Shown: positions 5,150 through 60,827 of the stretch, piece after piece
Layout: the number at the start of each line of letters is the position of its first letter
Position numbering within the stretch: position 1 is the stretch's first letter
Source: Eutreptiella sp. 'Long Island Sound 2002'
Taxonomy: Eukaryota; Protista; Euglenida
Length of the DNA: 64,000 nucleotides
Assembly (NCBI GenBank): GCA_964036045.1
Contig: OZ038378.1
Span: 141,546,001-141,610,000 of the forward strand
Reading direction: 5' to 3'
Position numbers and translations under genes: made by a program
The notes under the pieces: model-generated
What the model saw: only the letters and a program-made list of their open reading frames with translations
Told to the model about the DNA's origin: nothing
Database searches by the model: none

Positions 5150-6477
5150 CCCCTCTTTGCCCCCGAATGGGTGGCTATTCCCCGTCCGCAAAAACCGGGA
5201 AAAGGCATCTGTGATTGTTCATTTGGTGAATTTTAATAGTCAGCACCAAACCAAACCGGCGTCCTTCACCCTCCCGGTGGTGGAGGACCTAGGTTTTCTG
5301 ATTTGAGCTCACCATATGAGTGCGGGGTCCGGCCATTTGTCTCTACCACCCCCCCCTTGTGGCCTCTTTGAATGACCCGTTTTTGCATGCTTTGGAGCAA
5401 TTGCGCCTGCCCCCCCCCCCCCCAGGTGCCCCTTTGCTTCTGTGCCACGTAGACCTTAAAAATGCCTTCTGGAGTTTGAGATTGCCCCCCGAATACTAGG
5501 ATTCTTCCAGAGTCCATATTGACCTATGGGTCGGCACGACCTATGGGTTTTCATGCCTGCCTTTCGGCTAGCAGTTTTCCCCATCCATCTGCCATACAGT
5601 CTTAGGTCTTATCCTGGACCGCCTTTCCCTGGTGTCTGTTTTGGTTTTTCACTACCTCGACGACTTTTTAGTGGTTGGTTATGGCTTAGGCAACGTAAGA
5701 TCTGCGGCTGGCCAGCTATGCTCCGCCTTGCGTCTCGAGGGCGCCATCATTTGCCCAAAAAGCATCCTGGAGCCGGTCCCTGAGATTGATTGGTTGGGTA
5801 AACGCCCCGTGCTTTCGGGGGAACTTGTGGGGGTATTTGCGATGGCGGGGGGGGGGGGGGGGGGGGGGTGGTAAATCCTGGTTGGCATGTGGCTACGCAC
5901 TGCCATCTTGCCCATGTCTCGTCAGCATGCACGCCGGGTGATAGGTGGCTTTTCTTGGGCCATGAGACCACAAATTGGGGCCTGCCCTTTCCTGGCGGGC
6001 TGGTGGTGCCACATGATGTGGGGTGACTCTTCTGTAAGGGTCTGTCCGCTCAAGCTCGTGCCGAGTCTCCTGCATTGCCTGGTTATGGTTTGCCGGGGCT
6101 GGACTCCAGCTATTGTTCTACCCCCTCCTCCTGCTTCAAGAGGCTTGTTTTTTGTTGACGCAGCACTTGATATCCACACTTACAAAGTAGGCCTGTGGGG
6201 CCCAGCTTTCGGTGGTAGGGTTTTTAAATGCAGCAATGGCGTGCGCACGCAACAAGAGGCCGAGTTGGATGGGGTTATAAAAGGGTTGCGCTTCATAGCT
6301 AACGTGAATTGGCCGGTTTTTCGACTTGTAGGAGACAATGCTGCGTCCCTGGAGCAGGCTGCAGGTATGCGGGCGTCTTCAGGTCTTCACCGCCACAATA
6401 GGCAACTGCGCAGACTTTTTATCTCTCCCTCAGAGCCCCCCGTTCCACCTTCCTTGAATGGGTCCTTGGTGATTTAA
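5150..6477 (+). pseudogene. Reverse transcriptase plus RNase H of the retroelement (frameshifted)
   Basis: RT motifs: EKASVIVHLVNFN...FTLP, DLKNAFWSLRLPP, CLPFG*QFSP, FHYLDDFLVVG, KSILEPVPEIDWLGK. RNase H motifs: FFVDAA, TQQEAELDGV, VGDNAASL. Confidence 0.85.
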
Positions 6478-6710
6478 ATCCCGCAGACTGTTTCAGCAGG
6501 ATCGACAGTGATTTTTTTGGGGCAGCTACGCTATGGCTGCAGCGTCAGCGTGGAACCAATTCCGGGCTCTGCTTACGTTCCTTGACTGTTTGGACCTTGT
6601 CTTTCCCTAAGGGACGCCTGGGTGCTTCACGCAACCGGAATTCTTGCCTTGTTGGTGCGGGAGGGTGTGTGTGTTTCAGGAGTAAAGCAGCGCGCCGAAT
6701 TAATCATATG

Positions 6711-6831
6711 GCTTCCGATTTTACTTTGCTTGTGCAACCGCTGTTTGCTTTAGCTAACAAGAGTTGCACTCCCTATCTGCTTTGCTTTATGATTGTTGTT
6801 ACGCTTCCGATTTTACTTCGCTTGTGCAACC
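6711..6831 (+). repeat. Split direct repeats B1-A2-B2 (right terminus of the YR retrotransposon)
   Basis: B1 gcttccgattttactttgcttgtgcaacc, then A2, then B2 gcttccgattttacttcgcttgtgcaacc. Confidence 0.9.
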
Positions 6832-7110
6832 CCGAGAAGGTAGGGGTCATGTAGCCATTTTGATCCTTCCCCACTATGGGGACCCCCAGAGGCAGGGGTT
6901 GTGTTGCCATTCCGCCCACTTCTAGGCCCCTCAGAAGGTAGGGGTGATGTAGCCACTTTTGATCTTATCCCCTTTTATGTGCACCCAGAGAACGCAGGGG
7001 TTGCATAGCAATTCTGCCCACTTCTAGGCCCCCGAGAAGGCAAGGGTGATGTAGCCATTTCTGATTTTGTCCCTCTTTCTGGGGACCCCCGAGAACGCCG
7101 GGGTTGCTTG
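6832..7110. repeat. Array of a dispersed ~50-bp (dimer ~100-bp) repeat family, consensus core ggggacccc.agaagg.agggg..atgtagcca...tctgattttgtcccc
   Basis: Several diverged units here. Related arrays lie at about 24725-24945, 30530-30690, 34830-35235, 49855-50070, 52830-53130 and 54700-54940. Confidence 0.8.
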
Positions 7111-7344
7111 AATGCCGTACACGCAGTTTGCACACAGTGCAAAGTTTTGTATGGCAGCAAATACTCAAACCCTAGTTCCGGCCTCCTTCCACGAAAATTT
7201 TGTTCCATGGCAGGGTTTTTTAAGCTTCCTATGCATTCGGACGGATTATGTAGCCATTCTGCCCACCTCTGGGCCGAGTGCCTTCTGCAAGGTCTACGGC
7301 CGATGGGCCCCTGTGTTGGGACATTCTTTTTTTTCTTCTCATCA

Positions 7345-7572
7345 GGCCTCTTTCCGGTTGGGGATATGGATCGGCCCCTTTCCAGTCGGGGATATGGATT
7401 GGCCCCTTTCCGGTTGGGGATGGGGATTGGCCCATTTCTAGTTGGGGTTATGAACTGGCCCTTTTCCGGTTGGGGATATGGACCGGCCCCTTTCCAATTG
7501 GGGATATGGATTGGCCCCTTTCCAGTTGGGGATATGGACCGGCCCCTTTCTAGTTGGGGATTGGCCCTTTTC
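7345..7572. repeat. 28-bp tandem repeat, about 8 units
   Basis: Unit ggggatatggattggcccctttccagtt, repeated head-to-tail without spacers. Confidence 0.9.
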
Positions 7573-7796
7573 TTTTTGTGGGTAAGTGGTCCAAGGGGCG
7601 GTTCCCCTTTTCAAAATCCGGCTTGCACGGTGCCCAATCCCAAACATGTGTGTTTCCAAACCTAGACCACAACACATGCACTCACCACAAAGCGATGGGA
7701 GAGTCGGCACCCTGGAAAGCAGTGGTGGCAAAACAACGGTAGTGGGCACCGTGTCGGTTTGCACAATGCCAAAATAGTGCCAATAGGAAGCAAGTA

Positions 7797-8013
7797 GAGC
7801 CCTATGCAGTTCACCCCACCATGGGGACCCCTTTGCCTAGGGTTATGGAGCCTTACTGATTTCTCCCAACTATGGGTCCCCTTGGCATGGGCTTATGGAG
7901 CCTTATTCAGTTCACCCCACCATGGAGACCCCGTGGCCTTTGGTTATGGAGCCTTATTCAGTTCTCCCCACCATGGGGACCCCTTGGCCTAGGGTTCTGG
8001 AGCCTTATTCAGG
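7797..8013. repeat. 51-bp tandem repeat, about 4 units
   Basis: gagccttattcagttcaccccaccatggggaccccttggcctagggttatg; units start at 7797, 7848, 7898, 7949 and 8000. Confidence 0.85.
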
Positions 8014-8300: not shown

Positions 8301-10083
8301 CACTCCGGCGATCACTCGAGCGGCCACTCGGGCAGTCACTCGCGCGGTCACTCGGGCGGTCACTCGGGCGGTCACTCGGGCGGTCACTTGGGCGGTCACT
8401 CGGGAGGCCACTGGGGCTGTCACTCGGACCGTCACTAAGGTGGTCACTCGGGCGGTCACTCAGGTGGTCACTTGGGCGGTCACTCGGGCGGTCACTGGGG
8501 TGGTCACTCGGGTGGTCACTCGGGTGGTCACTCGGGCGGTCACTCGGGCGGTCACTCGGGCGGTCAGTCGGGAGGCCACTGGGGCTGTCACTCGGACCGC
8601 CACTAAGGTGGTCGCTCGGGCGGTCACTTCGACCGTCACTCGAGCGGCCACTCTGGCGGTCACTCGGGCAGCCCCTCGGGAGGTCAGTCGGGTGATCACT
8701 CGGGTGGTCACTTGCGCGGCCACTCGGGCGGTCACTCGGGCGGTCACTCGGGCGGTCACTCGGGTGGCCATTGGGGCGGCCACTCGGACGGTCACTCGGG
8801 CGGTCACTCGGGCGGTCACTCGGGCAGTCACTCGGGCGGTCACTCGGGCAGCCACTCGGGCGGCCACTCGGGTAGTCACTCGGGCGGTCACTCAGGCAGC
8901 CACTCGGGCGATCACTTGTGTGGTCACCGGGGCGGTCACTCGGGCAGCCACTCGGGCGGCCACTCGGGCGGTCACTTGGGTGGTCATTCGGGCAGCCACT
9001 CGGGCGGCCACTCGGGAGGTCAGTTGGGTGGTCACTCGGGTGGTCACTTGCGCGGCCACTCGGGTGGTCACTCAGGCGGTCACTCGGGCGGTCACTTGGG
9101 TGGCCACTGGGGCGGTCACTCGGGCGGTCACTCGGGCGGTCACTCGGGTAGTCACTCGGGCGGTCACTCAGGCAGCCACTCGGGCGATCACTTGTGTGGT
9201 CACGGGGGCGGTCACTCGGGCAGCCACTCGGGCGGCCACTCGGGCGGTCACTTGGGTGGTCATTCGGGCGGTCACTCGGGCAGCCCCTCGGGAGGTCAGT
9301 TGGGTGGTCACTCGGGTGGTCACTTGCGCGGCCACTCGGGTGGTCACTCGGGCGGTCACTCGGGCGGTCACTCGGGCGGTCACTCGGGCAGCCACTCGGG
9401 CGGCCACTCGGGCGGTCACTTGGGTGGTCATTCGGGCGGTCACTCGGGCAGCCCCTCGGGAGGTCAGTTGGGTGGTCACTCGGGTGGTCACTTGCGCGGC
9501 CACTCGGGTGGTCACTCGGGCGGTCACTCGGGCGGTCACTCGGGCGGTCACTCGGGTGGCCACTGGGGCAGCCACTCGGGCGATCGCTCGGGCGGTCACT
9601 CGGGCGATCGCTCGGGCGGTCACTCGGGTAGCCCCTCGGGAGGTCACTCGGACCGTCACTCGGGTGGTCACTCGGGCGGTCACTTGCGCGGCCACTCGGG
9701 CGGTCACTTGAGCGGCCACTGGGGCGGTCACTCGGGCGGTCACTCGGGCGGTCACTCGGGCGGTCACTCGGGCGGTCACTCGGGTGGCCACTGGGGCGGC
9801 CACTCGGGCGATCGCTCGGGCGGTAACTCGGGCGATCGCTCGGGCGGTCACTCGGGTAGCCCCTCGGGAGGTCAGTCGGGTGGTCACTCGGGTGGTCACT
9901 CGGGCGGTCACTTGCGCGGCCACTCGGGCGGTCACTTGAGCGGCCACTGGGGCGGTCACTCGGGCGGTCACTCGGGTGGCCACTCGGGTGGTCACTAGGG
10001 CGGTCACTCGGGTGGTCACCGGGGCGGCCACTCGGGCGGTCACTCGGGCGGCCACTCGGGCGGTCGCTCGGGTGGTCACTCGG
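8299..10083. repeat. 12-bp minisatellite (TCGGGCGGTCAC)n, ~1.8 kb, with internal higher-order duplications
   Basis: About 150 diverged 12-mers. They translate as (GHSG)n, (VTRA)n and (RSLG)n, which explains the long overlapping ORFs. Confidence 0.95.
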
Positions 10084-14899: not shown

Positions 14900-17800
14900 C
14901 CTGACCCCAATTCAAGCGCCAATTTGGGTGTCAATTCAGGCGCCAATTCCTGCGCCAGTTTGGATGCCAGTTTGGGCGCGAATTCGGGAGCTAGTTCAGG
15001 CACCAATTTGGGTGCCAGATCACGCGCCATTTTGGGCACCAATTCGGGCGCCACTCCAGGGGTGACTTCGGGAGCCACTTCAGGAACCAATTCAGGCGCC
15101 AGTTTGCGCATCACTTTAGGCACCAATTTGGGCGCCAATTTGGGCGTCAGCTCAGGTGCCAGTTCCTCGTGCCCGAATCGGCGCCCGAACTAGCTCCCAA
15201 ATTGGCTCCCGAAGTGGCGACTGAAGTGACGCCCAAATTGGTGCCCGCACTGGCGCCAGAATTGGCTCCCGAGCTTGCGCCCGAGCTAGCGCCCAAACCG
15301 GCCGTATTGGCACACCAACTGGTGCGCCAACTGGCGCCCAAACTGGTGCCCGAATTGGCACCTGCACTAGCACGCGAAATGGCTCCCGGGCTGGCGCTGG
15401 GACTGGCACGTGAACTGGGGTAATAAGTGGCGCTCAAATTGGGGTTCACACCCCAATTGGTGAGGCGCCATTTTGGGCACCATTTCGGGCGCCAGTTTGG
15501 GAGCTAGTTTGGGCGCCAACTCGGGCGCTAGTTCGGTTGCCAGTTCGGGCGCCAATTTAGAAGCCAATTCAGGTGCCGCTCCGGCCGTCGGTTCGGGTGC
15601 TGGTTCGGGCGCCAAGTTGCACCCCAATTCGGGCGCCAACTCGGGTGCCAGTTCGAGAGCCAATCCCAGCACTATTTTGGGCACCAATTCGGGCGCCACT
15701 CCAGGGGTGACTTCGGGAGCCACTTCAGGAACCAATTCGGGCGGCAGTCCGGGCGTCAGCTCGGGTGCCAGTTTGGGCGCTAGTTTGGGCGCCACTTCGG
15801 GCGCCAATTTGGGCACCAGTTCAAACGCCAATTCGGGCGCCACTTCGTCCCCAGTTCACGTGCAGTCCTGGCACTAGCCCGGGAGCCATTCCGCGCGCTA
15901 GTGCAGGCGCCAATTCGCGCACCAGTTCTGGTGCCAGTTTGGGCGCCAGCTGGTCCATGCGCCAATTCGCCCATTGATGGAGCACGTGTCTGAGTTTGTT
16001 TTCTGATAGTAGGGACGGACTATAGAATCCACGAAGGGAAATTAGTTCGGGCGGCAATTTGGGAATCAATTCGGGTGACAGTTTGGGCGGCAATTTTGGC
16101 GCCAGTTCGGGAGACATTTCGGGCGGCGATTCTTACGAGGTTGCATGCAAGGCTGCTGGGTGGGCTAGGCTGGGATTGATGCTTGGAAAAGGGGGCGGGC
16201 GGGGAGGTTGGAGAAATTGCTTGGAAATTTTGATGGGCTGGGGTGCTTGAGGGAAATTCTTTCGAGATGGCATGCAAGGTTGCTAGGTGGGCTAGGGTGG
16301 GATTGGTGCTTGGAAATTGCTCATGGTCAATGCGCGGAAAAAGTGTTCGTGGTGTTCCTACCAAGAAGTGCTTCGGGATAGTAGTTCCAACAACGCCGCG
16401 ACACACCATTGTGTGGAACCGATTGTTGTCTCCATGGGCCAACTAAAAAAGTCGGTTGTGAATACTAGAGCAAAGATGTAGCAATACCCCTAACCAAATA
16501 TACATTTCACGGGAAGCATATTTGTTACATGTGTTTGCACGCCAATTCGGGCGACAGTTCGGGCGCCACTTCGCACACCAATTCGGGCGCCAATGGCGGT
16601 AATTTGGGCGGCATTCCGGGCACCAGTTCAGGCGCCAATTTGGGCGCCAACGTGGGCGCGACTTCGGGCGGAAATTCAAGAGCTACTTTGGGCGCCAATA
16701 CGGGTGCCACTCCAGGCACTAGTCCAGGCGGCAATTGGAGTGTGAGTTCGGGCGTCACTTTGCGCATCAGCTCGGGCTTCAGCTGGGCGCCAGCTTGGGC
16801 ACCAATTTGGGCACCGGTTTGCTTGTTTGCACGCCAATTCGTGCGCCAGTTTGGGCGGCAATTCGGGTGCCAGCTCGAGCGCCACTTCGCCCGCCATTTC
16901 GCGCGTCAGCTCGGGCGCTAATTTAGGTGCCAATTTGGGCGGTAATTTGGGCGGCATTTCGGGCACCAATTCGGGGGCCAGTTCGGGGACCAGTTCTGGC
17001 GCTAGTTCACGTGCCCAATCGGGCGGCAATTTGGGTGCCAATTTGCACGGCACTTTGGGGGCCAATTCGGGCACCAATTCGGGGGCCAGTTCAAGCGCCA
17101 GTCCAGGCACCAAGTTTAGGCACCGATTCGGGTGCCAATTTGGCGCCTGTGTGGGTGCCAGTCCGCGCTCCACCTCGGGCGGTAGCTCGCCAGTTTGGGC
17201 GCCACTTTGGGCGGCAATTCGGGCGCGGATTTGATCGCCAGTTTGGGCTCCAGTATGAGCGCTAGTTTGGGCAGTGATTCGGGCACCAATTCGGGCGGCA
17301 ATTTGGGTGTGGATTCACAGCAATTTGGGCGCCAATTAGTGCACCATCTGGGGTGCTAGTTGAGGCACCAAGTCGCGCGCTAGTCTGCAAGCCACTTTGG
17401 GCGCAAGTTGGGGCGCCAATTTGGGTGCCACTTTGCGCGCCGATTCAAGCACCAATTTGCTGCCAATTCGGGCACCACTTTGGGTGCTTGTTTTGGCTTC
17501 AGTTCTAGCACCAGTTTGGGCGCCAATCCGGGGGCCAGTTTGTGTGCCAGCTTGCACACCAATTGTCGCACCAATTCAAGCGCCACTTGGGGTGCCAATT
17601 CGGGTGCTAGCTCGCACGCCGGTTCAGGCGCCAATTCCGGGACCACTTCGGGCCCCAATTTGGGTGCCCATTCTGGCGCCAGTTTGGGCGCCAGTTTGGG
17701 CGCCAAAACCTGTGCCAGTTCGGGCACCAGTTGGGACGCCAATTTGGGCGCCTCTTGGGGCGCCAGTTGGGCCGCCAGTTCCGGCGTTGTTCGGGCGCCA

Positions 17801-18435
17801 ATTTGGGTGCTTGTTGGCACCAGTTCGAGCTCCAATTCGGGCCCTGTTTGGTGCCAATTTGGGTGCTAATTTTGGTGCCAGCTGGGGTGTCAATTCCGGC
17901 GTCCATTCGGGCGCCAATTGGGGCGCCACTTTTGGTAGGCGCCACCTGGGGCCAATTGAGGCGCGGGTTTGAGCCGCAATTCGGGCGCCAATTCGGGGAC
18001 CTGTTCGTGCGCTTGTTTGGGCATCAATTCGATTGCCAATTCAGGCGGTAATTCGGATGCCAGTTCATAGGCGCCAGTTCGGGCGCCAGTTCAGGCGGCA
18101 GTTCGGCCAGCAGTTTGGGCTCCAATTTGGGCGCTAGTTGGGGCGCCAATTCGGGCGCCAATTCGGGCACCTGTTCGTGCGCTTGTTTGGGCGTCCATTC
18201 GGGTGCCAATTCGGGAGCTAATTCGGACGCCAGTTCAGGTAGGCACCAGTTTGGGCGCCAGTTCAGGCGGCAGTTTGGGTGCCAGTTCGGGCTCCAATTC
18301 GAGCGCTAGTTGGGGCGCCAATTCGGGCACCACCTCCAGGTCTCACCTTGGCTGATGGGAGACTGAGCTAAGGAACCAATTCGGGTGCTAATTCGGGCGC
18401 CAATTTGGGCACCAATTCAGGCGCCAGTTCATGCC
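14900..18435. repeat. 12-bp minisatellite (TCGGGCGCCAAT-like)n, ~3.5 kb, in RAB3GAP1 intron 1, interrupted at about 15975-16530
   Basis: Hundreds of ggcgccaattcg/ggcgccagtttg variants, translating as (LAPE)n and (GANS)n. Confidence 0.95.
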
Positions 18436-46813: not shown

Positions 46814-47710
46814 GTCTCTGTGCATGGGCGTGTGTGTGCCTTTCTGTGCGTACACATGCGTGTGCGAACTCTGCGTGCAGGAAGACTCCATTTGCCGCCA
46901 GCCCACAGCAATGTTTGCAGGTTTGATAAGGGGGTGCACCTGTGCACGCGACTGCAGCATTTGTCATAGTTTGGGGAGTGGTGTATCTTCGCGATTGGTA
47001 TGCCCGCGATTTGGAAGTTTGAGAGCTGTGCACTCTGGGCCCCATTGGCTGTTATCATTGCTGCCTGTCACCCTCCTGTGGAGCGCAGCAGGCATTCCCT
47101 CAGTGGAGCAATGTGGCAGAACGGCGCATAGCTCGCCCTCATGGTCCGATGACCAAGTGCTCCAGTGGCTCTGCACTTGCATCTTCGGGCATACGGAATG
47201 CGTGGTCTTTCCAGGCACCCTTTGGTCTCTACTGCGACAATTCATCATTTGGCTTCATTCCATGCTCTGTGCATTGGCATTTGTGTCCACGTGAGTAATT
47301 GTGATGTCTGCATGGCGCTCAGCCGTGTCCGTGTTGGCAAGTGAGCTCTGAAGTAAAGTGATAAAGAAACTACCCCCCTCGTGCTAACGCAGCACCCTTG
47401 TCCAAACAAGCCATGCACGGGTGGGCCGTCTCCTCGGTTTGGGTACGCGACTCCCCCCCCCCCCCCCCCCTCCCTGCCCTCCGGGCCCACTTAGTTACCA
47501 AGGGTCAATAGCTACCGGCCATACATATGGTGGCCCCGAAGGCGCCCGAAAATTTTTTTCATTCTCCTTGCCAACGTAGCATCCCTCCCCGCCCAGGCGG
47601 TGGAGCACCCCAACGCTATACTTGAACCCAACCTTGACTCCAACACCCACCCCAACCCTCAGCCTGCTCCTAACCCCTACACCGAACCCTACCCATGACC
47701 CTAACCCTAA

Positions 47711-48992
47711 TCAAGACTGAATATTGGGACCGAGCTGGTGGGGGAGGGAACATTAGCTATGACTGGTGAAGGAAATCAAGAATGATTCACACATTGATGG
47801 CTCTTCACAAAGTGAAATCAGCTTGCAAGTCAACCCCATCACCACGAGGCCCACTTTCAAGGCTTTTGTTGGACTTCTGAGGGGCCAAAATGCCCCAAAA
47901 TGGGCTCAAAATGGGCTCATTTCACCCGTTTGTGCACCCCAAATGGTCTAGGATGACTTTTGGAAAAACGCGTTTTTGACCCATTTTTGACCCATTTTTG
48001 GTCCCGAAACAGCCTTTTTTCAAGGCATTTTGGGATTTTCGGAGGACCAAAATGGGCCACCACAAGCTCAAAATGGTCCAAAAACACTTGTTTTAGCGTC
48101 GCACATGGTCTAGGATCATTTTAGAGAAAAGTCATCTTTTTGCCCCTACTGGACCCTAATGACCCATTTGGGCACCCACCTGTTTGGGCTTGAGCTTGCA
48201 GCTTGCCGCAGCCTAGTGGGCCTAAGTACGAGGGTGTAGGCGTCCGTTTGGGCAATTCTAAGGGGTGGAAACCACAAAATGTGGGGGGTTGCGGGTGGAG
48301 TAGGTGCCCTCGGAATCGCATTTTGAGCCATGTAGCCAAAGATATGGCCTATTCTTGGTTTGTGGCTGTCGGCATTTGAAGCTTCTGGGGCCTTTTTGGG
48401 CCGTTTCCGGGACATGTCATGGAGTTAGAGGGCGGCAAAGAGCTCGTTGACACAGGGAAGTCAAGCCGCACGTGCAGAGTAGCCACCATTTCCCTTCGTT
48501 TGGCCGTTTTGAATGTGTTCTAGGGCTTTTTAAGCCCAAAAATGGCTGTTTTTGGCCCTAAAGTGCAGTTTTTGAAACTGAGGTCCGCCACTTGCACTTG
48601 TAGTTAATAAAATCGCCTTGGATGTTTTCACCCTCGTTTTTGAAAAGCAAAATCCACAAAGTTAATCTCGAACTCTTCAATCACGGTGCAAAAGCATATA
48701 AAACAAAAGTCCAACACTTCCCGGCCGCCACCGTTGAGTTTCTTGCTCAAACTTTGTGTGATTGTACTTCACACCCATAGGTATCATCCACCAAAATTTC
48801 ACCCGAATCTGAACCCCCACGACGGAGTTCTAATTTTCCCCCATTTCGCGCGTGCTGCTGCTTGCTGCTTGCTGCTGCTTGCTGCTTGCTGCTGCTTGCT
48901 ACTGCTTGCTGCTGCTGCTGCTAAACGTGGTAGGTCCACCCTAGACACTAAAAAGGGTTATAAAACCAAGACTGGTTCCACCAGCTCGGTGA
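47711..48992. mobile_element. Solo copy of a ~1.14-kb non-coding element bounded by CCCTAA-type hexamers (with a ~120-bp insertion)
   Basis: Begins ccctaa|tcaagactgaatattggg and ends ccagctcggtga|ccctagccctaa; homologous along its length to the units at 56768-60240. Extra sequence at about 48597-48717. Confidence 0.8.
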
Positions 48993-49156
48993 CCCTAGCC
49001 CTAACCCTAGCCCTAACCCTAGCCCTAACCCTAGCCCTAGCTCTCACCCCAGAGGGAGGGCAAGGGGAGGTAACGGGAGCCACCTGGACCCCCCCCCCCA
49101 ACCGACCCTCCCGACCCCCCCCCCCCCTATCACCCCTCCCTGAACCCCCCCTCCGA

Positions 49157-49197
<41 letters not shown>

Positions 49198-50081
49198 GGG
49201 GCCTTCGGCCCACTTCTACTGGGGGGGGGGTCGCGTACAAAAGCGAGGAGACGGCCCCCCCGTGAAGCCATGCAAAGACACGAGGGATCATCAACGCTAA
49301 TAAGCACAGGGCTCAGTTTAGATTGGCGCAGGCCCACAATTAAAAGGGTACAGCAAGCGGTCCTTAGAAGCGCGATCGGCAATCCCCGCCCCCCCCCCCA
49401 CACACACCGTATGGTGACATGTGGACTGTCACATGTGTGGTGTTGGTGACACTGTCAGCCACCCTCCACTGTGGTGGTGGTGGTGGGGAGAGGGTTGACC
49501 AATTGACCAGTGACATGGAAACCTGGGCACATGCATATGCACAACCAAAAGAATATCCAAAATCCAGTTGCCCTGGCACAGTGCCGAGGCAATATGATCG
49601 TCACATTCAGAGAAGGTAGAATAATCACAGCCCCCCCGGGGCGACACTAAGGGGGAGTGTTAGCGTGCCGGGCATCTTTTTTGACCCCTGTCCCACCGGT
49701 GACCTTTTAGGGGGTGCACTAAGGGGGCGCACTTAGCGCAATGCAACTATTTGGGCGTCTGCCCGTACTGGAGACCCATACTTTGAGATACTGGGGGCAT
49801 CATTGTTTCCCCTAGCATTACCCCTAGCGTTACCCCTAGTGTTACCCCTAGTGCAGGTTTTGAGATCTGATTTTGTCCCCTTTGTTGGGGACCCCCGAGA
49901 ATGCAGGGGTGACGTAGCATTTCTGCCCTCTTTCGGGCCCCCGAGAAGACAGGGGTGAGGCATCCAATTCTGATTTTGTCCCTCTTTGTGTGGGGACCCC
50001 CAGAATGCAGGGGTGACGTCGCAATTCTGCCCTTTTTTGGGCCCCTGAGAAGGTAGGGGCGGGATATGGAGTGCAGACCCC

Positions 50082-54300: not shown

Positions 54301-56735
54301 CTAGGTATTGACAACAGTCAATGTGTAGTTTTAAAAGCTATTAGGCATCCGGGTGAGAGGAACATCCTAATCAGGATCCTAATGTTCCACCACCAAACCT
54401 TGAGATGTGCAAGGCTGTGATACTCACAACGGGACCCCGAGATGGCTTGAGTTATGCGAAAATTTGTTTGATCAAGAATTTTGCCGCATGGAATTGATGA
54501 CCTATGTGCATGGTCTCTTAGTGTCAAATCGATTAAAATCTTGTGCAAGAATATGCAAGCTGTTAAATCTTGCTCACCACCATGCAATGTGACCTTACAC
54601 TCTTGCTGCACTTTGTGGTTGGGAGATGCAAAAAAAAAGGCGACATAGACCCAATGACCTTGGGGTCCCAAAATTGGGATGTAAGGAAATGACTTTATGG
54701 CTCCTCCCACCCCGGGGTCACCAAAGAGGGGAGGGGAATAGTGGCTACATAACCCCTGCTAAATGGTATTGCCCATGGTGGCAAGGCCAACATCGCCTGC
54801 CCATCTCTATCCCCGATGTGGGGAGGTAGAAAGTGGTCGCAGAGCTTCAACAGTCTTGGGTGACCCAAAATAGGAAGGAAAATAGTGGCTACATAACATT
54901 CGCCATATAACCCCTCGTGCCTTGGGGTCTCTAGTGTGAGGAGGAATCAAACAATGGCAACATCGGTCCCCAACATGTGAGTTTCCTTTTGTCTTGGGGG
55001 CACGCCAACATGACAAAGACATGCGACTCAGCGGAGCGGTTTTACGCGATTTCCATATGTCCCGCCCATGTAGCATGCAAAGCAAATTCGGTTACCACAA
55101 CATCATTTGCATGCCCAATCCAATCCCAATCCAATCCAATCCCAACCCAATCCAACCCAATCCCCCGGCCCCAGAGGTAACCCGGACCCAAAATTTGGCA
55201 TGCCTGGTGGGGTCCCACTAACCCACCCAAGATGTGGTCTTCCTTTGATTGGCAGGGATTTTTAGGACTCTAGAACCGCATGCATGCACAGTTGTGGGGT
55301 CAAGGCCTCACCTGGTCACCAACCCACGGTCCACGCCGCCTTCCCTGCGGGACTTGACTGGGCGGCCGTACCCGGGTGTCCGGTCACAAGGCCTACCGGA
55401 CTGTTGACTGCCCCACACCCCGCAGTGGCGCTTGCGGGCGGGAGATGCCACCCCGCCTGTGTGTATGTGCCGTTGTGTGTCTGAGGGGGGGGGAGGGCTG
55501 TGGCACACTTGCTTGCTCCATTGTTGTTTGGCGTTGGCGCACATAGTGCGGGGAAGTGTGCCTGGTGCTCCTGGCCCCGGCAGGGAGGTTGTAGAGCCTG
55601 ACGCTGAACCCGCCGGGGGAGATGTGGGCCTAGGCTCGCAACCTCCACGTCACAAGGACAAGCTACCCAACTGCTCCACGACTGCCTATTGGCACGGGAA
55701 GGCGGTGGTACGTGGCGCGACTGGGGTCAGGCCCGCACTCCTTGACTGCCTTCGGCACAGGTGGTGCTGCCACGTGGGCTGGGTCTGGCTCCCCACTACC
55801 GAGGGCATACCCTGGGCAGTTGGAGGGGCCCCAGGGTGCAGAGAGTGCTTCCCTGCCCTGGGTGCCACCAGTGCTAGCTGCACAAGCTGCGGCGCTACAG
55901 CCTGCGTAGACGAGGGGGCCCAGAGGGCACCACGGCCGGAGGGGGGGGGCGTCAATTGAGCCTTTTTTTGGGGGGGGGTCTAGCCAGAGGGCTGTATAGA
56001 CTCCCTCCCCCCCCCCCCCCCACCCGGAGTTGAAAGCCCGGTTGCCCCAGTGTCAAGATTGTTCCCACGACATGGGGGCCTCACATTGCTGCTTTCTGCG
56101 CCTGCAAATACCCCTCATGGTCAGCAGGGCTCACCATCGTGTGTGTTGACTCCAAGTGCCTCTGATGTGTGGCTCCCTCGGCACCACCACTTGGGGGTGG
56201 GCTCTGTGTGTGTTTGCCCAACATGGCTGGCTGGAGGCTGCGAAGGGCACTCATTCTGAGAGCCTCTGATTCCCAAGCCCCAACAGCTCCAAATGGTTAG
56301 TGCAGCCCGCTGGTCGTGACGCCATCGGGCGCTCTGTGGCGATCAAGGGGTGGCCAGCGCCGCCTCACCTGGCCCAACGGGGGCATAGGTGTGGGTGTAA
56401 GTATGGGCACGGACCTGGGCACAGGGGACCGATGTTGGTGGTATCGTTGAAGTGCGTGTGTAGCCCCGGGGGGGCGGCCGGGCCCGGTCCTTGTATGCGA
56501 CCCCCCCCAGCCCCCCCCCCCCCCGGGTTTTGAAAGATAGTGGTGCCGGGTCAGCCACCAACAAGTGTCCCTAGAGAAAACTGTGCGGCGCCGAAGGCGC
56601 CAATTTTTTTTTTCATGCTATGTGTTTATATTCAAAATACTCAAAATTTTGTAGAGAATTCATATTTGTGTTAAAACAACAAGAAAAAATTTTGACCTGA
56701 AGGAGGGCTACAGGAGGGCTGCAAGCCCTAACAGC

Positions 56736-56767
56736 AACCCTAGCCCTAACCCTAACCCTAACCCTAA
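56736..56767. repeat. Interstitial telomeric-type hexamers (CCCTAA)n
   Basis: aaccctagccctaaccctaaccctaaccctaa directly abuts the 1.14-kb element. Similar tracts lie at 57899-57952, 60241-60254, about 47698-47710 and 48993-49040. Confidence 0.85.
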
Positions 56768-59700
56768 TCAAGACTGAATATTGGGACCGAGCTGGTGGGG
56801 GAGGGAACATTAGATATGAATGGTGAGGGACATCAAGAATGATTCACACATTGATGGCTCTTGACAAAGTGAAATGCACCTGAACCCCATCACCACGAGG
56901 CCCACTTTCAAGGCTTTTTGGACTTCTGAGGGGCCAAAATGCCCCAAAATGGGCTCAAAATGGGCTCATTTCACCCTTTTGTGCACCCCAAATGGTCTAC
57001 GATGAGTTTTGGAAAAATGCGTTTTTGACCCATTTTTGACCCATTTTTGGTCCCGAAACAGCCCATTTTCAAGGCATTTTGGGATTTTCGGAGGACCAAA
57101 ATGGGCCACCACAAGCTCAAAACAGTCCAAAAACACTTGTTTTAGCGTCGCACATGGTCGAGGATCATTTTTGAGAAAAGTCATCTTTTTGCCCCTACTG
57201 GACCCTGTTGACCCATTTGGGTACCCACCTGTTTGGGCTTGAGCTTGCAGCTTGCCGCAACCTAGTGGGCCTAGGTATGGGGGTCTAGGCGTCCGTTTGG
57301 GCAATTCTGAGGGGTGGAAACCACAAAACGTGGGGGGTTGCGGGTGGAGTAGGTGCCCTCGGAATCGCATTTTGAGCCATGTAGCCAAAGATATGGCCTA
57401 TTCTTGGTTTGTGGCTGTCGGCAGTTGGAGCTTCTGGGGGCCTTTTTGGGCCGCTTCCGCGGCATATCATGGAGTTAGAGGGCCGCAAAGAGCTCGTTGA
57501 CACGGGGAAGTCAAGCGGCACGTGGAGTGTACCCACCGTTTCCCTTCGTTTGGCCGTTTTGAATGTGTTCCAGGGCATTTTTGGCCCAAAAATGGCTGTT
57601 TTGGGCCCTGAACTGCAGTTTTTGAAACTGAGGTCCGCCACTTGCGAATCCCGTTCCCGGCCGCCACCGTTGAGTTTCTTGCTCAAACTTTGTGTGATTG
57701 TACTTCACACCCATAGGTATCATCCACCAAAATTTCACCCGAATGTGAAGCACCACGACGGAAATCTGATTTTTACCCATTTCGCGCGTGCTGCTGCTTG
57801 CTGCTTGCTGCTTGCTGCTGCTGCTGCTAAACCTGGTAGGTCCACCCTAGACACTAAAAAGGGTTATAAAACCAAGACTGGTTCCACCAGCTCGGTGACC
57901 CTAACCCTAACCCTAGGGCTAACCCTAACCCTAGGGCCAACCCCAACCCTAATCAAGACTGAATATTGGGACCGAGCTGGTGGGGGAGGGAACATCAGCT
58001 ATGACTGGTGAGGGACATCAAGAATGATTCACACATTGATGGCTCTTGACAAAGTGGAATCGGCTTGCAAGTGAACCCCATCACCACGAGGCCCACTTTC
58101 AAGGCTTTTTGGATTTCTGAGGGGCCAAAATGCCCCAAAATGGGCTCAAAATGGGCTCATTTCACCCTTTTGTGCACCCCAAATGGTCTAGGATGACTTT
58201 TGGAAAAATGCGTTTTTGACCCATTTTTGACCCATTTTTGGTCCCAAAACAGCCCATTTCCAAGGCATTTTGGGATTTTCGGAGGACCAAAATGGGCCAC
58301 CACAAGCTCAAAACGGTCCAAAAACACTTGTTTTAGCGTCGCACACGGTCGAGGATCATTTTTGAGAAAAGTCATCTTTTTGCCCCTACTGGACCCTAAT
58401 GACCCATTTGGGCACCCACCTGTTTGGGCTTGAGCTCGCAGCTTGCCGCAACCTAGTGGGCCTAGGTATGGGGGTCTAGGCGTCCGTTTGGGCAATTCTA
58501 AGGGGTGGAAACCACAAAAAGTGGGGGGTTGCGGGTGGAGTAGGTGCCCTCGGAATCGCATTTTGAGCCATGTAGCCAAAGATATGGCCTATTCTTGGTT
58601 TGTGGCTGTCGGCATTTGAAGCTTCTGGGGGCCTTTTTGGGCCGTTTCCACGACATATCATGGAGTTAGAGGGCCGCAAAGAGCTCGTTGACATGGGGAA
58701 GTCAAGCCGCACGTGGGGTGTACCCACCGTTTCCCTTTGTTTGGCCGTTTTGAATGTGTTCCAGGGCTTTTTAAGCCCAAAAATGGCTGTTTTTGGCCCT
58801 AAACTGCAGTTTTTGAAACTGAGGTCCGCCACTTGCGAATCCCGTTCCCGGCCGCCACCGTTGAGTTTCTTGCTCAAACTTTGTGTGATTGTACTTCACA
58901 CCCATAGGTATCATCCACCAAAATTTCACTGGAATCCGAAGCACCACGACGGAGTTCTGATTTTGGCCCATTTCGCGCGTGCTGCTTGCTTGCTGCTTGC
59001 TGCTTGCTTGCTGCTTGCTTGCTAAACCTGGTAGGTCCACCCTAGACACTAAAAAGGGTTATAAAACCAAGACTGGTTCCACCAGCTCGGTGACCTTAAT
59101 CAAGACTGAATATTGGGACCGAGCTGGTGGGGGAGGGAACATCAGCTATGACTGGTGAGGGACATCAAGAATGATTCACACATTGATGGCTCTTGACAAA
59201 GTGAAATCAGCTTGCAAGTGAACCCCATCACCACGAGGCCCATCTTCAAGGCTTTTTGGACTTCTGAGGGGCCAAAATGCCCCAAAATGGGCTCAAAATG
59301 GGCTCATTTCACCCTTTTGTGCACCCCAAATGGTCTAGGATGAGGTTTGGAAAAATGCGTTTTTGACCCATTTTTGACCCATTTTTGGTCCCGAAACAGC
59401 CCATTTTCAAGGCATTTTGGGATTTTCGGAGGACCAAAATGGGCCACCACAAGCTCAAAACAGTCCAAAAACACTTGTTTTAGCGTCGCACATGGTCGAG
59501 GATCATTTTTGAGAAAAGTCATCTTTTTGCCCCTACTGGACCCTGTTGACCCATTTGGGCACCCACCTGTTTGGGCTTGAGCTTGCAGCTTGCCGCAGCC
59601 TAGTGGGCCTAGTTATGGGGGTCTAGGCGTCCGTTTGGGCAATTCTGAGGGGTGGAAACCACAAAAAGTGGGGGGTTGCGGGTGGTGTAGGTGCCCTCGG

Positions 59701-60240
59701 AATCGCGTTTTGAGCCATGTAGCCCAAGATATGGCCTATTCTTGGTTTGTGGCTGTCGGCATTTGGACCTTCTGGGGGCCTTTTTGGGCCGTTTCCGCGA
59801 CATATCATGGAGTTAGAGGGCTGCAAAGAGCTCGTTGACACGGGGAAGTCAAGCGGCACGTGTAGTGTACCCATCGTTTCCCTTCGTTTGGCCGTTTTGA
59901 ATGCGTTCCGGGGCTTTTTCGGCCCAAAAATGGCTGTTTTGGGCCCTGAACTGCAGTTTTTGAAACTGAGGTCTGCCACTTGCGAATCCCGTTCCCGGCC
60001 GCCACCGTTGAGTTTCTTGCTCAAACTTTGTGTGATTGTACTTCACACCCATAGGTATCATCCACCAAAATTTCACCCGAATATGAAGCACCACGACGGA
60101 GTGCTGATTTTGGCCCATTTCGCGCGTGCTGCTTGCTTGCTGCTTGCTGCTTGCTTGCTGCTTGCTTGCTAAACCTGGTAGGTCCACCCTAGACCCTAAA
60201 AAGGGTTATAAAACCAAGACTGGTTCCACCAGCTCGGTGA
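56768..60240. mobile_element. Head-to-tail array of three ~1.14-kb non-coding elements separated by telomeric hexamers
   Basis: Units are 56768-57898, 57953-59093 and 59100-60240. The spacers are 9 hexamers and 1 hexamer (ccttaa). Each unit has a 13-bp subterminal inverted repeat (accgagctggtgg/ccaccagctcggt) and a (TGCT/TGC)n tract near one end. Confidence 0.88.
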
Positions 60241-60827
60241 CCCTAACCCTAACCCCCCCCCCCCCTCACCCTTGGCTGGACTCCCCCGTGACCCCTGGCC
60301 AACCCCCCCCCCCCCCAACCCCCGGCAGGACCCCCCCCCGACCCCCGGCTTGACCCCCCCCGACCCCTGGCTTGACCCCCCCCCCCCCGACCCCCGGCTG
60401 GACCCCCCCCCCCCCCCAACTGCCCCCCCCCCCCCCCCCCCCGAGTTTTGACAGATAGCTGGGGGGTGGGTCGCATCAGGACCGGTTGTAGTCGCCCCCC
60501 GGGTGTGTAGCGCCCACTTCCCTGCTGCCAGGGAGATGTTGTATCATGATCGGATCTCAAGCGGAGGCTGACCCTTCAAAAAGTCACTGGAATCGGAGCG
60601 CAAACCAGAGTCAGAACTGATGTCACAGCTGGAGTGAGACCGTACCCATTCCTGCGCCCCGCCTCTGCCTGTCCCCATGTGCCCGGCTATGCCCACACCC
60701 TTGCTCCTTCCCATGCCCGCAGCCATCCCCATGCCCCGTGCCCCGCGCCCAAAGCCGATCACATGCCCACGGCCCCATCCGTCCCTGTGCCCATGGGTTT
60801 GCTGGTACACTTGACCCCCGTCCACAG

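Follow-up and report, generated by a model that had tools for sequence, protein, structure and literature searches.

A hexamer-bounded 1.14-kb element in a euglenid genome: a probable Helitron-derived non-autonomous transposon inserting into telomere-type repeats

Organization of the locus

We analyzed a ~1.14-kb repeat ("the unit") that occurs four times in a 64,000-bp stretch of the genome of the euglenid Eutreptiella sp. 'Long Island Sound 2002' (contig OZ038378.1, positions 141,546,001 to 141,610,000 of the forward strand; "the window" denotes this whole stretch). The genome analyzed was a 2.28-Gb chromosome-scale assembly (G000). In the window, each unit opens with TCAAGACTG directly behind a hexamer ending in TAA (CCCTAA, except for the CCTTAA that precedes the last unit at 59100-60240) and closes with CTCGGTGA directly before a CCCTA/CCTTA-type hexamer. 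Three of the units form an array whose spacers measure 54 bp (nine hexamers) and 6 bp. Thus the preliminary description of this DNA, which had reported four units bounded exactly by hexamers and separated by whole hexamers, is borne out by the ends and spacers. The units and the putative transposons that hold them (host A and host B) are as follows, the strand given for units (minus) being the Helitron sense discussed below:

47408-47415 and 49265-49272: 8-bp target duplication of host A, AAGCCATG
47416-49264, plus strand: host A, putative inverted-repeat transposon, holding one unit
47711-48992, minus strand: unit 4, 1,282 bp; follows the second hexamer of the host-A tract
56456-56463, no strand: left 8-bp target-site duplication of host B, GTGTGTAG; identical 8-mer at the right
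56464-60502, plus strand: host B, putative inverted-repeat transposon (miniature inverted-repeat transposable element, MITE), holding three units; contains poly-C runs, GC hairpins and a telomere-like tract
56726-56767, plus strand: left part of the C-strand hexamer tract of host B
56768-57898, minus strand: unit 1, 1,131 bp; inverted repeats at 56786-56798 and 57884-57896; 96.1% identity to unit 3
57899-57952, plus strand: spacer, 54 bp, nine hexamers including the host-B-type variants CCCTAG/GGCTAA
57953-59093, minus strand: unit 2, 1,141 bp
59094-59099, plus strand: spacer, a single hexamer CCTTAA
59100-60240, minus strand: unit 3, 1,141 bp; the reference copy
60241-60252, plus strand: right part of the host-B hexamer tract, two hexamers, followed by a poly-C-rich host region
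60503-60510, no strand: right 8-bp target-site duplication of host B, GTGTGTAG

All four window units carry 13-bp inverted repeats that are separated from the unit ends by 18 nt on one side and 2 nt on the opposite side, an 8-bp repeat (CAAGACTG) near both ends and a TGCT-type microsatellite tract, so that the asymmetric inverted repeats, direct repeat and (TGCT)n tract described earlier are present in every copy. On the plus strand of unit 3, the inverted repeats lie at 59118-59130 and 60226-60238, an internal duplication of ~145 bp at 59238-59380 and 59399-59543, and the microsatellite at 60127-60170. Unit 4 is broken at about unit position 885-892 by a 122-bp AT-rich insert (48596-48717). 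Read in the Helitron sense, the unit begins with TCACCGAGCTGGTGGAACCAG: a 5'-TC is followed by the first 13-bp inverted repeat, by a microsatellite of AGCA type, by a leader of ~0.9 kb with two ~145-bp internal repeats, and lastly by a 137-nt 3' end that carries the second inverted repeat and terminates in CAGTCTTGA.

The open reading frames (ORFs) of the unit gave no match in a Pfam search. One frame of 121-134 residues recurs among copies; it extends into the microsatellite, and its variable sites are split 55/50/52 among the three codon positions. Such a split shows no coding signature, and the earlier view that the unit has no credible ORF is confirmed. Moreover, an Rfam search of window positions 46.5-61.5 kb at permissive thresholds returned nothing: neither a ribozyme, a structured RNA nor a tRNA-like part was detected there.

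Hexamer phase and orientation of the unit across the genome

The 28-nt 5' end of the unit has 6,304 exact matches in the genome, 5,217 of which (83%) are preceded by an exact CCTAA, and the 29-nt 3' end has 7,650. Copies differ from the consensus by ~3-4%, which predicts a loss of ~18% over five bases. As the proportion of ends that kept CCTAA is about that expected from decay, essentially all copies were once flanked by hexamers. Among 66 different full-length copies sampled at 60 loci and in the window, the 5' flank ends in TAA in 64 and the 3' flank is of hexamer type, with a CC(C/T)TA-like start, in 63; moreover, all 28 distinct inter-unit spacers sampled are multiples of six composed of hexamers. 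Two units are joined through exactly one hexamer at 673 junctions genome-wide, and the same kind of search found no exact unit-to-unit junction free of a hexamer. Mapped across the genome, the copies thus hold the same hexamer phase at their junctions, which supports the view of the unit as a mobile non-autonomous element that inserts at a fixed phase and in a fixed orientation in TTAGGG-type repeats.

An older second family of ~1.4 kb has the first 49 nt, the last ~290 nt and the hexamer flanks in common with the unit. Therefore the ends are conserved, functional parts of both families. What had seemed to be a different element with a related 5' end, beside loci L022/L031, proved to be a composite in which the first 26 nt of the unit adjoin an inverted fragment of the ~1.4-kb family.

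Near-matches to the hexamer-free joint are confined to 38 same-strand copies of one variant junction at G000:C20:17786616-19069805, in which GGTGA is directly followed by C-CAAGACTG. The copies lie ~57-63 kb and 1-3 kb apart, and their arrangement suggests that a large segment with a deleted junction was amplified in tandem. One-hexamer junctions are missing from C1:39-127 Mb and C3:60-159 Mb and are frequent in the distal parts of both contigs; the unit family, or its host transposons, is concentrated towards the chromosome arms.

Host transposons and the origin of the hexamer tracts

The limits of host B were set where its flanks cease to match other host-B copies (L004, L020, L028 and L006), and its terminal inverted repeats and target duplication can be read directly from the window. 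Thirty copies were recovered when the genome was searched with the left arm of host A. Six of these are empty (555-752 bp): their 8-bp duplications are perfect, and their (CCCTAA)n tract runs without a break through exactly the site at which the other copies hold one or more units. A seventh empty copy lies in L074. Identical 8-bp duplications surround both window hosts as well as the six empty copies; by their terminal inverted repeats and 8-bp duplications, the hosts classify as putative small inverted-repeat DNA transposons, that is, hAT-like MITEs. Without units, a host measures ~0.55-0.6 kb, and hosts are older than the units inserted in them.

Among filled host-A copies, the first unit follows hexamer 1, 2, 4 or 5 of the tract. 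The spacers of host-B arrays repeat one and the same 18-bp variant pattern, CCCTAA-CCCTAG-GGCTAA. Given the empty tracts, the variable position of the unit and the host-specific hexamer variants in the spacers, the tract is host sequence and the unit is the insertion. The earlier suggestion that the unit itself seeds telomere-like sequence is therefore not upheld, as tracts pre-exist in empty hosts and the spacers carry the variants of their hosts. In host family C, G-strand hexamers (GGTTAGGGTTAGG) lie downstream of the C-strand tract, which makes it palindromic in part.

Loci sampled through the unit and showing visible flanks fall into host families A, B or C in 23 of ~25 cases, the three families being strongly divergent from one another; in the remaining two, the unit sits in short or degenerate hexamer runs outside these hosts.

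Several features of hosts and flanks were seen in passing. All host families contain long poly-C runs and the hairpins GGCC-TTCG-GGCC and GGCGCC-GAA/TAA-GGCGCC (at window positions 47416-47710, 56464-56725 and 60253-60502 and in the flanks at L018, L024, L027 and L030). The empty host A of L074 (8860-9490) lies, with its 8-bp duplication, in a long minus-strand open frame of a different Helitron, the Rep match of which is 28% identical to L075 (see below). At L009, a solitary unit outside the recognized hosts is followed by two hexamers and then by tRNA-like T-arm sequence (GGTTCGAATCC).

Origin of the arrays

The mean distance between units is 0.0577 within arrays (21 pairs) and 0.0571 between arrays (2,124 pairs). 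The unit tree is not a star phylogeny, because 105 alignment columns carry shared minor states (each in at least 8 of 66 copies) that distinguish subfamilies. In 29 of the 30 arrayed units, the closest copy is found at a different locus, usually on another chromosome, at a distance of 0.5-6% (<3% for 21 of the 29), while the best array mate is 3.5-8.4% distant in all but three arrayed units. In the window, the three arrayed units are 3.5-4.0% distant from one another versus 1.7-2.9% from copies elsewhere: unit 1 is 2.9% distant from its closest relative, on another chromosome, and 3.5-4.0% from its array mates, and unit 2 is 1.7% distant from its closest relative, which lies elsewhere, and 3.8-4.0% from its array mates. 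Since relatives are found at other loci and subfamilies are mixed within arrays, arrays arise mainly by repeated independent insertion beside earlier copies. By the same comparison of sequences, the three arrayed window units are three separate insertions into one host-B copy. It had been proposed, as one of two options, that tandem copies are rolled out; neighbors of different subfamilies and the genome-wide lack of hexamer-free junctions speak against this.

Amplification of a fixed part of the host is another way in which arrays might form: the unit would then be an internal satellite of a composite host transposon, its copy number changing through unequal crossing-over or rolling-circle amplification. 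Most copies do lie inside host transposons. Moreover, a minority of neighboring units are near-identical (0.8% and 1.8%), and arrays of constant period exist, such as nine copies 1,161 bp apart on C1; therefore local duplication also happens sometimes. However, neighbors usually belong to different subfamilies, empty hosts exist, and the same young units (0.4-0.8% apart) are found in different host families or tract positions, that is, in three divergent host families as well as outside hosts. We thus regard a satellite origin as extremely improbable.

Homology to the leader of a Helitron

Helitron Rep domains lie within long open frames at hundreds of places in the genome. One of these, at L075 (G000:C6:28324000-28333999), belongs to an ORF with a Helitron_like_N match (E 4.8e-25), the sole domain in the first 1,236 residues, which were the part scanned; the AP-endonuclease domain that Helentrons carry fused to Rep/helicase was not seen in this part. 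Unit positions 138-855 match L075:4336-5067 in antisense (74.6% over 740 bp, E 1e-133), and the matching region lies upstream of the Helitron_like_N ORF, i.e. in its 5' non-coding leader. In a global alignment, nucleotides ~50-1003 of the minus-strand unit are colinear with the first ~1 kb of the L075 Helitron counted from its 5' end, a stretch that takes in the microsatellite and the ~160-bp repeats. The match to this leader is present in every copy of the unit. At least 12 copies of the L075-type leader have an identical starting point, and at least three of them (on C13, C2 and C7) have, among the Rep matches listed, one at the expected distance. Therefore the leader is part of a Helitron and not a chance neighbor.

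The L075 family resembles the unit in several ways: its first ~1 kb is 70-84% identical to the unit and has the same layout of a microsatellite followed by ~160-bp repeats, and, like the unit lineage, it has ORF-less derivatives of ~1.1 kb that form arrays. The L075 family is a sister lineage of the unit rather than its mobilizing partner, and the unit itself can be read as the ~1-kb leader of a sister Rep/helicase Helitron joined to a 137-nt 3' end. Built in this way, the unit has the usual make-up of non-autonomous Helitrons. It belongs to the known Helitron class as an unusual target-specific variant, and the Helentron/DINE-1-like character suggested in the preliminary description is borne out by the homology to the 5' leader of a Rep/helicase-encoding Helitron.

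At L075:4067-6289, this Rep/helicase Helitron family has a 2.2-kb leader of ~160-bp repeats, and its ~1.1-kb derivatives are abundant and often stand in direct or inverted arrays; the L075-leader search gave 9,925 first-look candidates. A Helitron fragment near the L012 array (L074) was considered as a relative and set aside, as its sequence is not similar to that of the unit and its ends lack hexamers.

Comparison with Helentron-type elements and mode of insertion

In DINE-1/HINE elements, subterminal inverted repeats of 12-15 bp lie 2-4 nt from the 5' end and farther from the 3' end (Thomas et al. 2014, PMC4067079). The unit is similar in that i) its first 13-bp inverted repeat is 2 nt from the 5' end and the second is farther from the 3' end; ii) its 5' inverted repeat has a short inverted repeat nested within it; iii) it combines a microsatellite, central repeats and a lack of coding capacity; and iv) its copy number is far above that of the partner. 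It differs in the distance of the 3' inverted repeat from the end (18 nt, versus 38-60 nt in mites; PMC4067079) and in the target, which is a specific hexamer phase and not any TT. Across a head-to-tail junction, the inverted repeats pair in a 13-bp stem (-21 kcal/mol, z -7.7), and the 3' tail, the hexamer and the 5' TC lie between its two arms.

Several points weigh against the assignment to Helitrons: i) in the Helitron loci examined (L074 and L075), no Rep/helicase element with the unit's own ends and hexamer flanks was found; ii) the 5' terminus of the L075 family differs from that of the unit, starting with TATATATATG, and its 5' flank has no hexamers; iii) the unit has the 5'-TC of canonical Helitrons, but its 3' end is CTTGA and not CTRR; iv) no clear stem-loop follows the 3' inverted repeat (fold z -0.43), unlike the hairpin that canonical Helitrons have 10-20 nt from the 3' end, the only structure between this repeat and the unit end being a 6-bp AATATT palindrome; v) the sense given to the unit is a probable one, derived from the ORF direction of a relative and the asymmetry of the inverted repeats; and vi) a gain of one hexamer per insertion, i.e. 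a core duplication of the recombinase type, is formally possible.

The hexamer phase is continuous across insertions and tract totals are all multiples of six, so insertion occurs without target-site duplication, save for a possible gain of exactly one hexamer. The host-A tract averages 46 bp in empty copies (n=7) and 52 bp in copies with one unit (n=12), a difference that is not significant. The target is also unlike the AT of canonical Helitrons, as TTAGGG repeats contain no AT dinucleotide. The boundary can be placed only to within one base, as GGG^TTA and GGGT^TAGGG are equally compatible, so that a T^T target like that of Helentrons (TT or TY) is possible.

Site-specific recombination would produce a similar picture. 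A circular copy of the unit (with a GGTGA-CCCTAA-TCAAG junction) might integrate through a tyrosine recombinase with a CCCTAA core, in the manner of Crypton, DIRS or TATE elements. Integration of a circle was the first option of the preliminary description. Such a route would fit the scarless insertion at fixed phase and orientation, the smallest spacer of exactly one hexamer (673 junctions, none without a hexamer) and the average excess of about one hexamer in single-unit hosts over empty ones, which is not significant. However, none of the relatives of the unit that were seen encodes a recombinase, homology to a Helitron leader extends over ~950 nt of the unit, and the inverted repeats, at 2 and 18 nt from the hexamer, are asymmetric and unlike the arm sites of recombinases. 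The tyrosine-recombinase helper that had been proposed at window positions 3.2-4.1 kb also found no support: the best match of the ORFs there was to an N-terminal SAM-like domain at E 0.24, a PDB search returned nothing, and no hexamer pair lies near them. When the window ORFs of 2.6-5.1 kb were searched for a recombinase helper, none had a significant family or PDB match. Recombinase-mediated integration is thus very unlikely.

The telomeric repeats on both sides of the unit and its fixed orientation would also be expected of a short interspersed nuclear element (SINE)-like retroelement inserted by target-primed reverse transcription at TTAGGG nicks, as in the telomere-specific long interspersed nuclear elements (LINEs) TRAS/SART or in endonuclease-deficient Penelope-like elements, and the conserved ~290-nt region shared by the two families at one end could be seen in the same light. 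However, neither end of the unit has a poly(A) or simple-repeat tail; truncated copies are not in excess (7,650 versus 6,304 ends, the scored matches being nearly all full length); Rfam finds no ribozyme or structured RNA; and inverted repeats and homology to a Helitron leader are not expected of a SINE. Hence a retroelement origin has, in our judgment, an extremely small chance of being correct.

Proposed mechanism

Taken together with the Helitron homology, we consider it probable that the unit is a Helitron-derived, HINE/DINE-1-like non-autonomous transposon that inserts only into telomere-type hexamer repeats and is mobilized in trans by a Rep/helicase protein. Alongside the observed ends, phase, orientation, empty and filled hosts, independent array origin and leader homology, the model includes an enzyme, a single-stranded intermediate and an exact nick position that we infer. 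A Rep/helicase transposase from a sister lineage of the L075 family would nick both ends of the unit and peel off a single strand, giving a single-stranded or circular intermediate. The two inverted repeats would pair and draw the ends together. Insertion into TTAGGG repeats would then take place in their G-rich strand, at a single phase (GGG^TTA or GGGT^TAGGG) and with no target duplication. The usual targets would be the short (CCCTAA)n tracts inside several inverted-repeat transposon families rather than chromosome ends. As an insertion leaves hexamers on both sides, further copies could land adjacent to it, which would give head-to-tail arrays with whole-hexamer spacers.

A more specific version is tentative, and we hold it to be doubtful: an HUH transposase specific for the single-stranded telomeric G-strand might cut the target at a motif like the unit's own ends, with the tracts of thousands of MITEs serving as dispersed landing pads. 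If this were the case, a three-layer nesting of telomere repeat, MITE and Helitron passenger would shield genes from insertion, and the elements may in addition lengthen true chromosome ends, a role that has been proposed for those of Paramecium.

Relation to known telomere-targeting elements

TATE of Leishmania and TRAS/SART of Bombyx are likewise known to insert into telomeric repeats with position and orientation fixed, and their arrays are interrupted by telomeric repeats. They are retroelements encoding a recombinase and reverse transcriptase or an endonuclease and reverse transcriptase. The unit, on the other hand, lacks retroelement features, and its homology is to the leader of a Helitron.

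A closer parallel is found in the telomere-capping Helitrons of Paramecium aurelia and their ORF-less derivatives, which have telomeric hexamers of the same polarity on both sides (PMC13085455, BMC Biol 2026). They show an absolute orientation bias and many internal satellites, and it was inferred that they insert specifically into one of the two strands of the telomeric repeats (PMC13085455). The unit shares the one-polarity hexamer flanks and the fixed orientation. The two cases differ in that i) the Paramecium elements lie at or near germline chromosome ends, whereas the units are nearly all interstitial, in tracts of another transposon; ii) in the sense of the element, the repeats on both sides are C-rich in Paramecium and G-rich in the unit, given its probable sense; and iii) the repeat is TTGGGG/TTTGGG in Paramecium and TTAGGG in the unit of the euglenid host. 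In the literature library that was searched, no paper dealt with Euglena Helitrons.

Rolling-circle transposons rarely show strict sequence-specific targeting, and the only published case that we found is that of the Paramecium germline chromosome ends (2026). The unit family provides a second, independent and large data set (~6,000-8,000 insertions, with empty sites, subfamilies and copies 0.4% apart) from a distant lineage and, unlike the Paramecium case, from interstitial sites. It makes testable how an HUH nuclease picks its target and whether telomere-like tracts in transposons are safe landing pads. Moreover, it accounts for many of the interstitial blocks of telomere repeats and of the 1.1-kb tandem arrays in this 2.3-Gb genome, which could be mistaken for satellites or misjoined chromosome ends in assembly and annotation.

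Other repeat arrays

The start of contig C1 has no telomere array, and the nearest unit end is ~0.59 Mb in (C1:584161). A long perfect C-strand array (>560 bp) in left-end orientation begins at C1:200826798 (200.83 Mb) and may be an inverted or misjoined terminal piece. In the window, positions 8301-10083 and 14907-18430 hold long 12-bp satellite arrays of ~150 copies each, with units CACTCGGGCGGT and CGCCAATTCGGG-like.

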